Positions 15,859-59,160 of a stretch of DNA of 64,000 bases are shown here, in pieces. The notes beneath the pieces are model-generated. The model saw only the letters and a list, made by a program, of their open reading frames with translations. It ran no database searches and had not been told where the DNA came from. A program made the position numbers and the translations under genes. The stretch is taken from sequence record NC_004629.1. One strand, given 5' to 3'. Each line of letters begins with the position of its first letter. Within the stretch, counting starts at the first letter, position 1.

Positions 15859-15890
15859 ACATATTGCCTCCCCTAGGGGAGGCTTTATGC
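15859..15890 (+). terminator. ACATA-hairpin-TTTATG element
   Basis: GCCTCCCC-TA-GGGGAGGC. Confidence 0.8.
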
Positions 15891-15959: not shown

Positions 15960-17876
15960 ATGTCTAATGAACAACAGGTTACAAATAAGAAAAAGATTAA
16001 GGGCATTGAAGCCAAACATATTACTTATTGTACTGATCAATTTGGTAAGTTTACAGATGCGCATTTCGTTAAAGAACGAATTCATTTTGAAGATGGTACA
16101 ACTGCAAATAATTTAAGGATGTGGGAAAACTACCAGCGTCCTTTTTGGATTACCGCAAAAGGAATGCGTAACCATAAAGAAAAGAAAGATTACGAATATG
16201 AGCGTAACTTAGTTAAATACATGTCAACTCAAATTGACATGAAACGTAAGATTAGTAAAATCCTAGGTGACTATTCGGCTAGATCTCTTCGTCAACTAGC
16301 GCGTAGTCCTTACCTATATGGCAGTGATGTTAGTTCAACCTGTTATCTGAAGCATGATTATCAAGAACGTTATCCTGGTCTAATCTCTCTAAACACTGTT
16401 GCTGGCGGTGACATCGAAACCAACGTTTATGAAGCTGAGAACGATGGCCAGATTATCTGTATGTCAGTTACACATAAGAACAAAGCTTTCCTAGCCTATT
16501 TAAAACGATGGGTTAGTGATATTGAAGATCCAGTGAAAGAGACATTAGAACAAGCACAAAAAGAAGAGGTACTATCACATCTAATTAAAGAACGTGGTCT
16601 AGATATTGAAGTAATGGTTGTTGAAACACCAGTAGATATTATTATTGAATGTTTTAAACGACTACATACCTGGAAACCAGATTTCTTCGCATTCTGGAAT
16701 ATTAGCTTCGACATTGGCAGAATCTTAAAAACATTAGAACACTATGGCGTTAATCCAGCTGATATTTTTTCTGATCCATCGGTACCTAAGAATTATAGGT
16801 ATTTCCATTTTAAGATTGATGAGCCTATGACCACCACTGCATCTGGGGTCACTAAATCTAAAGGACCAGAGGATCAATGGCATTGGATTACAGCACCCGC
16901 TAGTTTTCAATGCATCGATTCTATGTCAACTTATCGAGTAACTCGATTAGCTAAAGGACGTGATCCTAACTATCGGTTAGAGTCTATTCTTAGAAAAGAA
17001 CTAAACATCGATAAATCTACGACCATTAAAAATGATAAGGACTTAGAAGATTTTATTGAAGGTTTTAATAAACAATTGGTAGACCGCCCTGGTGGTGTTA
17101 TTACTAAATATATTAAAAATATAGGCAGTAATGAATGGATCAGGGTAGATGATTTTATATTAAATGATAACTTTACGTATGGTGATTCCATTAGATACAT
17201 GATGGAGTTTGGTAAATTAACATTTGAGGAAACGATGCATCTTGGAGGTATCGATTGGCACCGTGAGATGCAAACTAAGCATAAAATCAAATATGGTCTT
17301 TATAACATCATCGACTCCATTCGACTAGAACAACTTGATGAACAAGTAAATGATCTTGGTCGTTCTATAAGTCTATTCTCTAAAGCATCCGATTATAAGA
17401 ACTTTAGCTCTAACCCAAAACGACTATGTGATGACATGCATTTCTGGTATCTAAATAGACCAGATCCATGTGTTATTGGTTCGAGTTCTGATCAGATGGT
17501 ACATGAGTTAGATCAGTATGTTATTGGTCATAATGACTGGATTGTTACATTGCCATCTTACATGGCAGGTCCAAATGGATTGCAGTGTGTTAAAGATTTA
17601 CCAAATTATAAAACCTTAATCTTCTGTCATATCGCCGACCTTGACATCGTGTCGACATATCCTAACGTTAGTCAGATTCTAAATATTGCACGTGAAACAT
17701 GTGTGATGGAATTCTCAATGATGGAAGGAATTAGTGAACACCATCGCCGTGAAGTTGGTGTAAACTTAACAGGCGGTAGGGTTAACGCTATTGAAATCAC
17801 ACAGAAGATCATGGGCGCTCCTAAAATGGACACCCTACTAGAGAAGTTTATTAATACCCATAAGAACCCAAAGTAA
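15960..17876 (+). CDS. gp82: Split family B DNA polymerase: 3'-5' exonuclease plus motif A half (gp82)
   Basis: ExoI GDIET, ExoII FWNISFDI, ExoIII YNIID, PolB motif A DLDIVSTYP. Motifs B and C are absent, as known for the split phiKZ polymerase. Confidence 0.9.
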   Translation: MSNEQQVTNKKKIKGIEAKHITYCTDQFGKFTDAHFVKERIHFEDGTTANNLRMWENYQRPFWITAKGMRNHKEKKDYEYERNLVKYMSTQIDMKRKISKILGDYSARSLRQLARSPYLYGSDVSSTCYLKHDYQERYPGLISLNTVAGGDIETNVYEAENDGQIICMSVTHKNKAFLAYLKRWVSDIEDPVKETLEQAQKEEVLSHLIKERGLDIEVMVVETPVDIIIECFKRLHTWKPDFFAFWNISFDIGRILKTLEHYGVNPADIFSDPSVPKNYRYFHFKIDEPMTTTASGVTKSKGPEDQWHWITAPASFQCIDSMSTYRVTRLAKGRDPNYRLESILRKELNIDKSTTIKNDKDLEDFIEGFNKQLVDRPGGVITKYIKNIGSNEWIRVDDFILNDNFTYGDSIRYMMEFGKLTFEETMHLGGIDWHREMQTKHKIKYGLYNIIDSIRLEQLDEQVNDLGRSISLFSKASDYKNFSSNPKRLCDDMHFWYLNRPDPCVIGSSSDQMVHELDQYVIGHNDWIVTLPSYMAGPNGLQCVKDLPNYKTLIFCHIADLDIVSTYPNVSQILNIARETCVMEFSMMEGISEHHRREVGVNLTGGRVNAIEITQKIMGAPKMDTLLEKFINTHKNPK

Positions 17877-18244
17877 TATATCAGTGGAAGCGCCGAGGAG
17901 GATATGAATGCTCATCTGTTGGTGACAAAAGATTCTCGGCTCTTTACGCAAGGCTTCCTGATGGTAGAACAATTGAGGAAGCTTGGCAGTTAGATTGTAA
18001 AGGATATCGCAAATACTCCAACCACTGGAAAGCTGGTAAAGGAAAACCACCACTAGACGGATATAATCCTAAATATGATGATTATAAAAATCTGTGGAAA
18101 GTATGGGCTGTATCTAATAAACATCTAATGGATGAATTACGTCAGAATGCAAAAGAACATGATAACTATCTTTCTGATGTTTTTGCTTCTACTGATATTT
18201 CACAGGCACGTGCTTTAGCAGAACTACTCAATGAAGGATATTAA
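17876..18244 (+). CDS. Conserved phage protein, putative NADAR-like fold, 122 aa, with ATA in place of an ATG start
   Basis: Frame IYQWKRRGGYECSSVGDKRFSALYARLPDGRTIEEAWQLDCKGY...SQARALAELLNEGY*; no ATG/GTG/TTG before the conserved part. Confidence 0.65.
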   Translation: MYQWKRRGGYECSSVGDKRFSALYARLPDGRTIEEAWQLDCKGYRKYSNHWKAGKGKPPLDGYNPKYDDYKNLWKVWAVSNKHLMDELRQNAKEHDNYLSDVFASTDISQARALAELLNEGY

Positions 18245-18311
18245 AAATGGAAGGTATTCCTAATTAAATATTATCAATTGATCATTACTGCTAATATAAA
18301 CTTCGACACAT

Positions 18312-18345
18312 CATAAAACCCTCCCATTACGGGAGGGTTTATTTC
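18312..18345. terminator. Bidirectional terminator
   Basis: AAACCCTCCC-ATTAC-GGGAGGGTTT between convergent genes. Confidence 0.8.
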
Positions 18346-18346
18346 G

Positions 18347-19861
18347 TTAACTAATTTGGTATTTTAAATTCTGATTACCGTTTAGAACATAAATCTTACC
18401 ATCGTTATTAAACGTATTGGCAAAACCTGCATCCACTAAACCAGTTTCTAAATTACCTAAATTTATCCATCGTGCTAATCGTGGTTCATAATACTTAATT
18501 GGTGCATTATTTTGATTTTCACCAGCGATTACATAAAGTTCACCAGATGGGCGTATATTAATAGCTGCACCAAGAGGTATACCTGTAGTTATTGGTTTAG
18601 ACCAATTATTGTTGGTTTGATTGTACGATATGATTCCAGTATTAACACCGGCACCAACCATACCACCAATAACACATACGCTATTATTATAAACACTCAC
18701 TGAATAATCTTGGGTATATACCCCAGTATCATTAAATGCTGCACCACTGGTATATGTATCTGTAGTTGGATTGTACATTAATGTAAATCCACGATTATTT
18801 GTTGCAGTTGTATCAGCTGCACCTAATATGTAGATTAACCCATTAAGACTAGTTCCACGTGCATACCGACAAGCTATCGTACCTGGTGATTTTATTTCCC
18901 ATGTATTAGTTGCAGGATCATAACACTGCATACCTTTAGTGAGTACACCATCTGTGGCACTTTCACCACCATAGAAATATACTTTACCATTAAATGCAAC
19001 AGCCGAGCATTGTTTAACTGCTATAGGTGTACCAGTTGGTTGTAATGTTGTTAACTTACCCGTGGCTAAATTCAATGTACGTAGAGCAGTATTAGCATTA
19101 TTCTTACCACCGTAATAATAGACTAAGTTACCTATTTGGGCACCTGCTGCCATTTCGTTATCAGTTTCAAAATCAGTAAGTTTAATAACATTATCTTTAA
19201 CGAATGGATATGTACCACTAGCATAAACCACTGGACGCCAACCTTGGGTTGCAGCACCCGTTTCACTACTTGACGAGCTAGTTATATCAATCGCATAGTA
19301 GCCACGATAGAGCTGGTCATTAACTGGATCACTACCTGGGTCTCTTCCCCAGTTAGTAGTACCATCAGTGCTAATACCACCAGCGACCGCTTGGTTAATA
19401 CCTAAGTCATTATCTGTAAATTTATAAGGCCAGTTAGCACCATTTAAATTAGATACGTGAACATTATAAAGTAACCTTTGCCATTCTGATGTGGCACCAG
19501 CCATTGTTAATAAACCAAATTTATAAATGTTCCCCATAAATCTAACTTCATAGTCACCATTACGGAGTCCGGCATTATTAAGCCGTGATTTTTGTATTGA
19601 TTTACGAGCTGGTTTCTTTGGTATGTAACAAGTAACATTTTTATTAGAGAACTTTAACCATGGTTGTCCATCATTGATTACTGTTCCAAATGTCATATTA
19701 ACTAATTTAGCTGCATCATCATAACCAAATAATTCTGAAGATGTTGTTTCACCATACAAACCTAATTCCCTTGTCCCAGCTATCAGTGTTTTAGGACCTG
19801 GATAAGGATCGGAATATATAGGCGTATTTGTTAGTCCAGAAGACAACAATAACTCAAACAT
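18347..19861 (-). CDS. Kelch-repeat (beta-propeller) virion protein with phiKZ paralogue-family N-terminal domain (gp83)
   Basis: Repeated YYYGG / YFYGG / YILG / VIGG / YVIAG...Y.P....W kelch blades. Confidence 0.85.
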   Translation of the reverse strand: MFELLLSSGLTNTPIYSDPYPGPKTLIAGTRELGLYGETTSSELFGYDDAAKLVNMTFGTVINDGQPWLKFSNKNVTCYIPKKPARKSIQKSRLNNAGLRNGDYEVRFMGNIYKFGLLTMAGATSEWQRLLYNVHVSNLNGANWPYKFTDNDLGINQAVAGGISTDGTTNWGRDPGSDPVNDQLYRGYYAIDITSSSSSETGAATQGWRPVVYASGTYPFVKDNVIKLTDFETDNEMAAGAQIGNLVYYYGGKNNANTALRTLNLATGKLTTLQPTGTPIAVKQCSAVAFNGKVYFYGGESATDGVLTKGMQCYDPATNTWEIKSPGTIACRYARGTSLNGLIYILGAADTTATNNRGFTLMYNPTTDTYTSGAAFNDTGVYTQDYSVSVYNNSVCVIGGMVGAGVNTGIISYNQTNNNWSKPITTGIPLGAAINIRPSGELYVIAGENQNNAPIKYYEPRLARWINLGNLETGLVDAGFANTFNNDGKIYVLNGNQNLKYQIS

Positions 19862-58707: not shown

Positions 58708-59160
58708 ATGAACGTTCAATTATTTCCAGAAGTCATCGAAAGATGGCAAGATGCCCTAAGGGTATCTCTTATAGAAAAAAATACCATGGTAGATAATAAG
58801 ATGTCTACCGTAGATGATGATAAATACATTAATACTTTCTTTGAAGAATTCCATCCTGTTCAGGATGCCTTTATGCCCAAAGGGCTAGAGGACTTTATTA
58901 CTGATTATGCCAAGAAAAACATTGAGGAGATCCTTCAAGAAAAACAGTTTAAGCGGGCCACCGAAAAGTTATATTGTTCGAGTGACCCGCATAAATGGCA
59001 GAAATCAAGTAATAAGGAAAAGAGTGAATCCTTTAAGGGAAGGTCCGTACATCAAACTAAAAAGAGGCTCCCCAACATTGTAGATTTGGAGGCCGTTGTG
59101 ATTAAGGTAGATTTCAATGGTAACACTAAAAATTGCGGGGCTTACTCAAGTATCAGTTAA
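58708..59160 (+). CDS. Hypothetical protein (gp121 by synteny)
   Basis: 150 aa with AATAGG RBS. Confidence 0.7.
   Translation: MNVQLFPEVIERWQDALRVSLIEKNTMVDNKMSTVDDDKYINTFFEEFHPVQDAFMPKGLEDFITDYAKKNIEEILQEKQFKRATEKLYCSSDPHKWQKSSNKEKSESFKGRSVHQTKKRLPNIVDLEAVVIKVDFNGNTKNCGAYSSIS

Follow-up and report, generated by a model that had tools for sequence, protein, structure and literature searches.

NADAR proteins hydrolyse the guanine-ADP-ribose that is made by DarT1 on single-stranded DNA (PMC11543638), and phage T4 uses an orphan NADAR, AdfN, against DarTG1 (PMC11257639). In phiKZ, a model nucleus-forming phage whose polymerase has recently been solved as a gp82/gp50/Rhc machine, the macrodomain AdfM acts against DarTG2 and cannot protect the phage DNA without import into the phage nucleus (PMC13309987). 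The protein gp82 is DNAP-N, the N-terminal subunit of the split replicative polymerase of this phage, and is paired with gp50 (bioRxiv 10.64898/2026.09.30.755723). In studies of -1 ribosomal frameshifting, the heptamer C_CCA_AAG has been described as 'highly shift-prone' in E. coli (Atkins 2016 review, PMC5009743). In the present work, we have analysed a stretch of 64,000 nucleotides (nt) from Pseudomonas phage phiKZ (sequence record NC_004629.1), the whole of which is referred to here as the window (phiKZ coordinate = window coordinate + 62000). Our analyses have identified, directly downstream of gp82, a conserved NADAR-like domain of 122 amino acids (aa), which is probably expressed as a C-terminal extension of this polymerase subunit by -1 frameshifting on C_CCA_AAG, a reading to which comparative sequence evidence lends fair confidence.

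The features on which this finding turns are listed below by window position and strand.

15960-17876, plus strand: gp82 (PHIKZ082), the 0-frame open reading frame (ORF), which ends ...HKNPK-TAA and encodes the DNAP-N subunit of the split B-family DNA polymerase.
17867-17873, plus strand: C_CCA_AAG, a -1 slippery heptamer of the form X_XXY_YYZ, read in gp82 phase as the codons AA[C] CCA AAG.
17873-18244, plus strand: the -1 frame that would be read after a slip, 123 sense codons (Val, Ile, Tyr-Gln-Trp...) followed by the TAA at 18242-18244.
17874-17876, plus strand: TAA, the stop codon of gp82, which adjoins the heptamer on its 3' side.
17876-18241, plus strand: the NADAR-like domain of 122 aa (phrog_9995), assigned from profile, homologue and structure-model evidence.
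18128-18244, plus strand: PHIKZ082.1 of RefSeq, 38 aa, a C-terminal fragment of the domain only, called from an internal ATG; phrog_33573 matches residues 85-122.

The frame led by the ATA codon at 17876 runs to the TAA at 18242-18244 and holds 122 sense codons between gp82 on the plus strand and gp83 (18347-19861), a kelch-repeat virion gene that converges on it from the minus strand. It is open upstream as far as 17864, so that the heptamer is included, and it contains no ATG, GTG or TTG upstream of the ATG at 18128. RefSeq annotates the last 38 codons only, and sister genomes are annotated likewise. A first-pass annotation of this DNA, made from the letters alone, had described a protein-like frame of 122 codons in this 'intergenic' gap, coupled to the polymerase stop through the TAATA at 17874-17878. 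The sequence at the junction is as it described, the 3' end of gp82 reading AAC CCA AAG TAA, and the protein-like character of the frame is upheld by its phrog_9995 match, by more than 500 homologues and by a ratio of non-synonymous to synonymous substitution rates (dN/dS) of about 0.03.

The product of the 122-codon frame matches phrog_9995 over residues 2-122 with an E-value of 2.5e-55. The frame was found by tblastn in 101 phage records (including those of PhiPA3 gp084, 201phi2-1 gp143, N4-like Achromobacter and Delftia phages, and PAU gp29), and large protein collections contain 502 homologues at E<=1e-3 and 845 cluster-representative matches. Between phiKZ and PA7, the frame differs by 9 synonymous changes and 1 non-synonymous change (dN/dS 0.027); the comparison of phiKZ with PhiPA3 gives a dN/dS of 0.03, with dS saturated and a dN of 0.07. 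The constraint on the first 84 codons, which are without any start, equals that on the annotated 38. The ATA codon and its surroundings (17860-17908, 49 nt) are 100% identical in 46 of the 47 records of the phiKZ genus, and contigs from RNA libraries show no variant and no indel at either the ATA or the heptamer. As judged from this pattern of substitution, the 122-codon frame is a real protein-coding sequence under strong purifying selection.

The heptamer C_CCA_AAG lies directly 5' of the gp82 stop codon, and the frame that a -1 shift upon it would enter is the NADAR frame. The string CCCAAAG is rarer in the 64-kb window than expected (2 found vs. 4.9 expected); its other occurrence, at 58876-58882, is read CCC AAA G in its gene and is thus out of slippery phase. 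Our survey of relatives, which covered GenBank phages, metagenomic jumbo-phage contigs and IMG/VR, has identified an in-phase heptamer, within a short junction where both frames are open, in all 19 lineages in which the domain lies in the -1 frame relative to a gp82-like polymerase. The heptamer is C_CCA_AAG in 12 of these lineages, G_GGA_AAG in 1 and A_AAA_AAG in 6, and none of the three is found in phase at any of the 10,467 other codons of the polymerases of the same loci. Depending on the lineage, the codon before CCA specifies N, P, S, A, L, D, T, V or E, and its third base is always C. In the G_GGA_AAG lineage, whose polymerase ends LGK*, a coordinated change of CCC to GGG keeps the slippery pattern. 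A stop codon stands directly 3' of the heptamer in 12 of the 13 lineages that carry C_CCA_AAG or G_GGA_AAG; in those with A_AAA_AAG, the polymerase frame stays open for a further 10-25 codons past the heptamer, and no ATG, GTG or TTG precedes the conserved core in the domain frame. The heptamer is thus conserved at the nucleotide level beyond the requirements of the protein, as seen from 19 lineages, three interchangeable types and an invariant wobble C. The codon aligned to the phiKZ ATA is ATG, ATA, ACA, ACT, GAA, GTA, GTT or GTG in the relatives, and by this alignment the position has the character of a linker codon, not of an initiator.

Other arrangements of polymerase and domain are also found among the relatives. 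In 3 loci from 2 lineages, the domain is in the same frame as the polymerase, with a single TAG between the two and no start codon for the domain. These are jumbo-phage loci from IMG/VR (L084/L086, with the TAG near 2595-2597, and L101, near 2580-2582) in which TAG is not otherwise used as a sense codon, and they suggest that the same fusion may be reached there by a different route, through readthrough of UAG or with the help of a suppressor tRNA of the phage. In another phiKZ-like contig, a single-ORF fusion of 698 aa (P0227) adjoins the PhiKZ_MCP gene; its residues 29-531 match gp82 in two segments (30% and 23% identity, E 5e-39 and 5e-11, respectively) and the domain occupies residues 561-677. 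Because of the heptamer swaps, the lineages with an in-frame TAG and this natural fusion, a polymerase-domain fusion as the selected product is the simplest reading of these loci. Phages that lack a nucleus encode this domain as a separate gene.

The first-pass annotation had mapped this frame by eye onto the NADAR fold, and this assignment is supported by structure comparison and by a transitive sequence link. An AlphaFold2 model of the 122-aa domain, built on 47 homologues, has a predicted local distance difference test (pLDDT) score of 96.8; it contains strands at residues 3-5 and 98-100 and a short stretch at 10-11, and helices at 33-41, 67-80, 82-93 and 110-119 along with some short ones. 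Of this compact, confidently folded domain, the 38-aa PHIKZ082.1 covers no more than the final helix and strand. In an exhaustive VIA-align comparison with 48,161 representative chains of the PDB, three chains scored above Z 5, all of which are NADARs, and the next match is at Z 3.5. The best match is the DarT1-associated NADAR of G. lovleyi (8bat; Z 8.9, 112 of the 122 residues, 2.9 Å), and the other two are E. coli YbiA (Z 7.0) and a Phytophthora NADAR with ADP-ribose (Z 6.8). In Foldseek searches, YbiA ranks first in the PDB, weakly, and NADAR entries are prominent among the weak tail matches in AFDB and BFVD; in the nearest cluster of the ESM Atlas, which is viral (template modelling score 0.73), one fifth of the members carry the NADAR-DarT1 family PF22397. 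At the sequence level, the family profile matches EVB95_187 of Rhizobium phage RHph_TM2_3B with an hhalign probability of 99% (E 5e-18), and EVB95_187 itself matches PF22397 ("DarT1-associated NADAR antitoxin") at an E-value of 5.7e-10 and 39.4 bits, the cut-off being 27. The bridge that EVB95_187 forms to PF22397 lends the NADAR assignment transitive support from sequence. The ORF163 protein of Ralstonia phage RP13 matches PF22397 at E 3.6e-4. We conclude that the domain represents a compact, previously unnamed clade of the NADAR superfamily, whose nearest branch is the DarT1-associated one.

The catalytic set described for NADARs consists of a Glu-Lys pair on the first helix, at a spacing of seven residues, together with an Asp, Glu or His of the last strand, the latter being Asp in the DarT1-associated clade, Glu in YbiA and His in phage gp30.3 (PMC11543638, PMC11125620). 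The reference residues are E88 and K95 in E. coli C7 and E36 and K43 in T4 AdfN, with D171, E125 or His in the last strand. The residues that are invariant in the phiKZ family include Y10, E11, S13, G16, D17, R19, S21, E34, Q38, D40, K42, K55, G56, D101 and Q110 (the invariance of E34, Q38, K42 and D101 was scored over 47 family members). The order of the family motifs, FS-x-[LF]...DG...E-x3-Q...K...LSD, mirrors the LSNF...DG...E-x3-Q-x2-K...H/D/E of NADARs, and D101 stands opposite the His of gp30.3 in an hhalign alignment that is itself non-significant. From its conserved positions, the phiKZ family appears to fit the NADAR catalytic pattern, with a +8 spacing and with Asp in the last position of the putative set.

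Members of the family are also fused to, or are neighbours of, DUF4326, DUF488-N3a, RNase H and SLOG (DUF2493) domains, including a neighbour of the YpsA-type SLOG; partners of the DUF4326, SLOG and DUF488-N3a types have been described for viral NADARs (PMC9503650, PMC7824862). The fusions include those to RNase H (P0153), DUF4326 (P0140) and DUF488-N3a (P0122). The domain is moreover embedded in giant multi-domain proteins of 2,000-6,100 aa (viz. P0136, P0157, P0159, P0173, P0194, P0230 and others), which are likely polyvalent effectors of phages or conjugative elements. In Bacillus phage SP-15 (L107, 1-853), the homologue SP15_003 overlaps the end of a DUF1273/YpsA (SLOG) gene that is annotated 'GTP-binding domain'; this pair at the genome end suggests a conserved pair of genes for the processing of NAD or ADP-ribose.

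The transcript and the RNA around the junction bring in four further features.

15866-15883, plus strand: upstream terminator at the end of gp81; the RNA contigs of the gp82 unit start at about 15925.
17873-17880, minus strand: TATATTAC motif, judged to be a chance match.
17884-17947, plus strand: candidate downstream hairpin, which starts 10 nt 3' of the heptamer; a putative frameshift stimulator.
18316-18340, plus strand: intrinsic terminator at the end of the mRNA of gp82 and the NADAR frame, common to the convergent gp83, where RNA contigs end.

One mRNA spans gp82 and the NADAR frame, from about 15925 to the terminator at 18316-18340, in the RNA-library contigs. The contigs of the plus strand stop at 18305 and 18342, and a nanopore cDNA contig has a poly-T loose end at 18313; the G+C-rich hairpin at 18316-18340 looks like a bidirectional terminator shared by the gp82 unit and gp83. 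One nanopore-cDNA contig (depth 9 of 133) is missing a base at 16142, inside gp82, most likely by nanopore error. Among the stimulators typical of -1 sites are a hairpin or pseudoknot 5-9 nt 3' of the heptamer, a Shine-Dalgarno-like sequence 5' of it and a slow codon next to it. The 131-nt stretch 17860-17990 folds, as a single sequence, at -37.3 kcal/mol with a z of -2.2, and the consensus fold of 12 lineages has -4.6 kcal/mol and one covarying pair. Neither an upstream Shine-Dalgarno-like element nor a strong dnaX-like 3' hairpin was detected at the phiKZ site; the stop that abuts the heptamer may act as a 'shifty stop' pause.

Two other sources of the domain were considered at the level of the transcript and rejected. 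Slippage of transcription, or editing, at the heptamer or the ATA is not indicated by any indel or variant in the RNA contigs, though rare variants are lost from contigs, and three consecutive A residues at the heptamer are too few for transcriptional slippage to be expected. For a separate transcript from an internal promoter, the plus strand 5' of the frame contains no site that resembles a promoter. On the minus strand, the first-pass annotation had pointed to a TATATTAC motif directed antisense into gp82. The motif is present at 17873-17880, but the idea of an antisense promoter was not sustained, the motif being at chance frequency in the window (8 found vs. 6.4 expected, with 23 of 100 shuffles reaching 8).

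Some further observations on the junction and its surroundings are recorded here. Within the domain, the Arg-Gly-Gly codons form a strong Shine-Dalgarno-like GAGGAGG, followed by out-of-frame ATGs at 17904 and 17908 (window 17896-17910), the former of which is the start of a 29-aa ORF in the annotation of one sister genome (L003, 2105-2194); this constellation is probably incidental to the coding sequence. In PhiPA3 and PS119XW, GGAGGA pairs with a downstream TCCTCC (Ser-Ser codons). The gene gp83 is annotated as virion or head structural, its product has Kelch-repeat beta-propeller matches (PF24681, E 1.9e-15; Kelch_6, E 4.9e-14), and Kelch genes hold the same place downstream of the polymerase in several relatives. 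The gp82-like polymerase gene is interrupted in L004 (PhiPA3; 623-1200), L009 (HPP-Temi; 1-890) and L084 (1827-2250). The PhiPA3 polymerase annotation ends 577 nt early, that of HPP-Temi carries an internal HNH endonuclease gene and L084 has many stops in the polymerase frame; these interruptions are probably introns or homing-endonuclease insertions.

On the basis of these results, the following mechanism is proposed. A fraction of the ribosomes at the last gp82 codons, CCA AAG, would slip back by one base and re-pair on CCC AAA, the adjacent TAA probably aiding the slip by causing the ribosome to pause. The slipped ribosomes would then read on in the -1 frame (GTA ATA TAT CAG TGG...) and yield a product of 761 aa, gp82(1-638)-Val-Ile-NADAR (638 + 123 aa), beside the normal gp82 of 638 aa. 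The polymerase-NADAR fusion would be reached through any of three interchangeable heptamers, through UAG readthrough in some lineages and through gene fusion in one. The tethered domain is predicted to strip ADP-ribose from DNA bases, and the tether would place it where single-stranded phage DNA is exposed. Since AdfM needs import and gp82 is a subunit of the polymerase, a NADAR tethered to the polymerase would enter the phage nucleus with it and be delivered to the fork, at which synthesis is blocked by lesions of the DarT type. The dose of the counter-defence would be set by the efficiency of frameshifting. We infer the slip from comparative genomics alone, and likewise infer its efficiency, the enzymatic activity of the domain, its target and the rationale of nuclear delivery. 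The function against DarT1/DarTG1 that was earlier suggested for this domain is plausible on the present analysis. We advance only tentatively, as a possibility somewhat short of an even chance, the complete account in which recoding in jumbo phages tethers a mini-NADAR de-ADP-ribosylase to a sub-population of the polymerase, which is imported into the nucleus and clears DarT1-type guanine-ADP-ribose at the fork.

Several observations weigh against this account, with regard both to the expression of the domain and to its identity. A conserved 3' stimulatory structure was sought and only a weak one, with almost no covariation in the 12-lineage consensus, was found. A canonical start is present at or next to codon 1 of the domain in PhiPA3 (ATG) and in 201phi2-1, Viktualia, PS119XW and L018 (GTG); independent initiation exists in the clade and could be ancestral. 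In D6 and Psa21, the only surveyed relatives with the domain in the +1 frame, it has its own GTG or TTG start and there is no heptamer. The recent cryo-EM study of gp82/gp50 (bioRxiv 10.64898/2026.09.30.755723) makes no mention of a longer gp82. The Pfam NADAR models (PF08719, PF22397 and PF08010) give no direct match to the phiKZ protein, nor to 46 close homologues or in a six-frame scan of the PA7 genome, and hhalign comparisons of the family with T4 gp30.3, E. coli YbiA and a profile of 43 gp30.3/YbiA sequences are not significant. A hidden Markov model search of PDB sequences with the family profile returned only spurious matches to ribosomal protein L3, and a language-model atlas search with the domain gave no informative neighbours. 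In the comparison with YbiA and T4 gp30.3, proposed in the first-pass annotation as a check of the NADAR assignment, YbiA is the top, though weak, Foldseek match in the PDB, and the profile comparisons are not significant. The putative catalytic Glu and Lys are spaced by +8 in the phiKZ family vs. +7 in NADARs.

The ATA codon at the junction could alternatively be read as a near-cognate start within TAATA, at which a separate 122-aa protein is made by initiation, or by re-initiation after gp82 termination. The overlap of the stop with the would-be start is like TAATG coupling, PhiPA3 has exactly TAATG at this place, the stand-alone homologues start with Met at the corresponding position, and several relatives have GTG or ATG there. 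However, ATA is a very poor initiator and no Shine-Dalgarno sequence lies upstream of it, and the relatives of the same arrangement that have ACA, ACT, GAA, GTA or GTT, none of which is a plausible start, keep both the frame intact and the heptamer in phase. Initiation at ATA would also leave unexplained the nucleotide conservation of the heptamer, its swaps to G_GGA_AAG and A_AAA_AAG, the TAG lineages and the natural fusion. This non-AUG start, which was among the explanations offered in the first-pass annotation, is consequently regarded by us as improbable. Two other explanations offered there are a sequencing error at the ATA and a recent inactivation (ATG to ATA) that would leave a dead gene, with only the 38-aa PHIKZ082.1, or nothing, being made. 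They draw on the lack of a canonical start upstream of 18128 and on the fact that annotators call the 38-aa piece only. Both are excluded, because 46 of the 47 phiKZ-genus genomes, which were sequenced independently, have the same ATA region, in agreement with the RNA contigs, and the frame is under purifying selection, with 9 synonymous changes against 1 non-synonymous change between phiKZ and PA7 and with the 84 start-less codons as constrained as the remainder; the 38-aa piece, furthermore, would comprise just the final helix and strand of a compact domain. We accord a dead gene or an error next to no probability.

The proposed gp82-NADAR fusion could, on the other hand, be made and have a job other than the reversal of DarT1 guanine ADP-ribosylation. 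The domain might act on soluble ADP-ribose signals or NAD breakdown products, on another base adduct or on RNA, or it might be a non-catalytic module of the replisome that binds DNA or ADP-ribose. The action of YbiA on intermediates of riboflavin and the reversal of cytidine ADP-ribosylation by NADARs speak for such a job, as do the fusions of the family to RNase H, SLOG, DUF4326 and DUF488-N3a, its presence within giant multi-domain proteins and a Glu-to-Lys spacing that is unlike that of canonical NADARs. Against it, the nearest relatives by structure and by Pfam are specifically the DarT1-associated NADARs, the invariant Asp after the last strand is that of the DarT1-associated clade (PMC11543638), a tether to a DNA polymerase argues for a DNA substrate, and phiKZ already has a DNA de-ADP-ribosylase against DarT2 (PMC13309987). 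We consider a different job for the fusion rather unlikely, though deserving of serious attention.

Searches of a collection of about 8.4 million papers and preprints returned no mention of gp82.1/PHIKZ082.1, of frameshifting in phiKZ or in the polymerase genes of jumbo phages, of the trans-frame protein or of a phiKZ NADAR, and the October 2026 paper on the gp82/gp50/Rhc structure mentions none of gp82.1, frameshifting and NADAR. Frameshifting, counter-defence by NADARs and the polymerase-linked de-ADP-ribosylases of RNA viruses are each known singly; their combination is new. If the frameshift on C_CCA_AAG is true, the phiKZ replisome has an unrecognised fourth activity, and the phage would possess a second counter-defence against DNA ADP-ribosylation beside AdfM, one that reaches the nucleus on the polymerase. 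The annotation of phiKZ would then be missing a conserved enzyme domain, for which dozens of related genomes have truncated or missing calls, and the locus would provide a clean case from a bacterial virus of -1 frameshifting that appends an accessory enzyme to a DNA polymerase. The heptamer swaps, the TAG readthrough and the direct fusion are natural "experiments" that point to the same fused product. The mini-NADARs themselves form a large unnamed clade of more than 800 cluster representatives, many of which lie within giant multi-domain proteins of phages and plasmids.

Among the known systems, the DarT1-associated NADAR antitoxins (DarG1; viz. 8bat, E. coli C7 and PF22397) are most similar to the phiKZ domain, as they include its best structural match (Z 8.9) and as a relative of the phiKZ domain passes their Pfam model. 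The Glu and Lys that are invariant in the first long helix of the phiKZ family, and its invariant Asp at the last strand, also putatively correspond to residues described for this clade (PMC11543638). However, these antitoxins are free-standing proteins of about 200 aa, whereas the phiKZ domain has about 122 aa, is phage-encoded and attached to a polymerase and is without a DarT partner gene; the phiKZ sequence itself is missed by the Pfam model, and its activity is predicted. T4 AdfN (gp30.3) is likewise a phage-encoded NADAR fold, an orphan used in counter-defence (PMC11257639), but its clade is another one (PF08010), in which the last strand carries a His, and it is a stand-alone early gene with its own start. 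With AdfM (gp104), a nuclear macrodomain that reverses the thymine ADP-ribosylation of DarT2, the domain would share the same phage and the same in-nucleus logic (PMC13309987). AdfM differs in its macrodomain fold, its separate gene and its own import, whereas the NADAR-like domain would enter with the polymerase.

In its mode of expression, the phiKZ locus resembles dnaX tau/gamma (A_AAA_AAG) and the lambda-type tail chaperones G/GT (G_GGA_AAG), which have the same X_XXY_YYZ heptamers ending in A_AAG (PMC5009743), and the three bacterial-type heptamers all occur among the phiKZ-like lineages. These systems make two products in a fixed ratio from one mRNA, as is proposed here for phiKZ. The phiKZ shift would differ from them in extending a catalytic polymerase subunit with an unrelated enzymatic domain, and its site abuts the 0-frame stop. 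A parallel to the fused product is provided by the replicase polyproteins of RNA viruses that contain NADAR or Macro domains, in which a de-ADP-ribosylating domain is also covalently linked to the replicative polymerase (PMC9503650). Those replicases belong to eukaryotic viruses and arise by polyprotein processing, whereas phiKZ is a DNA phage in which the corresponding link would be made by recoding.

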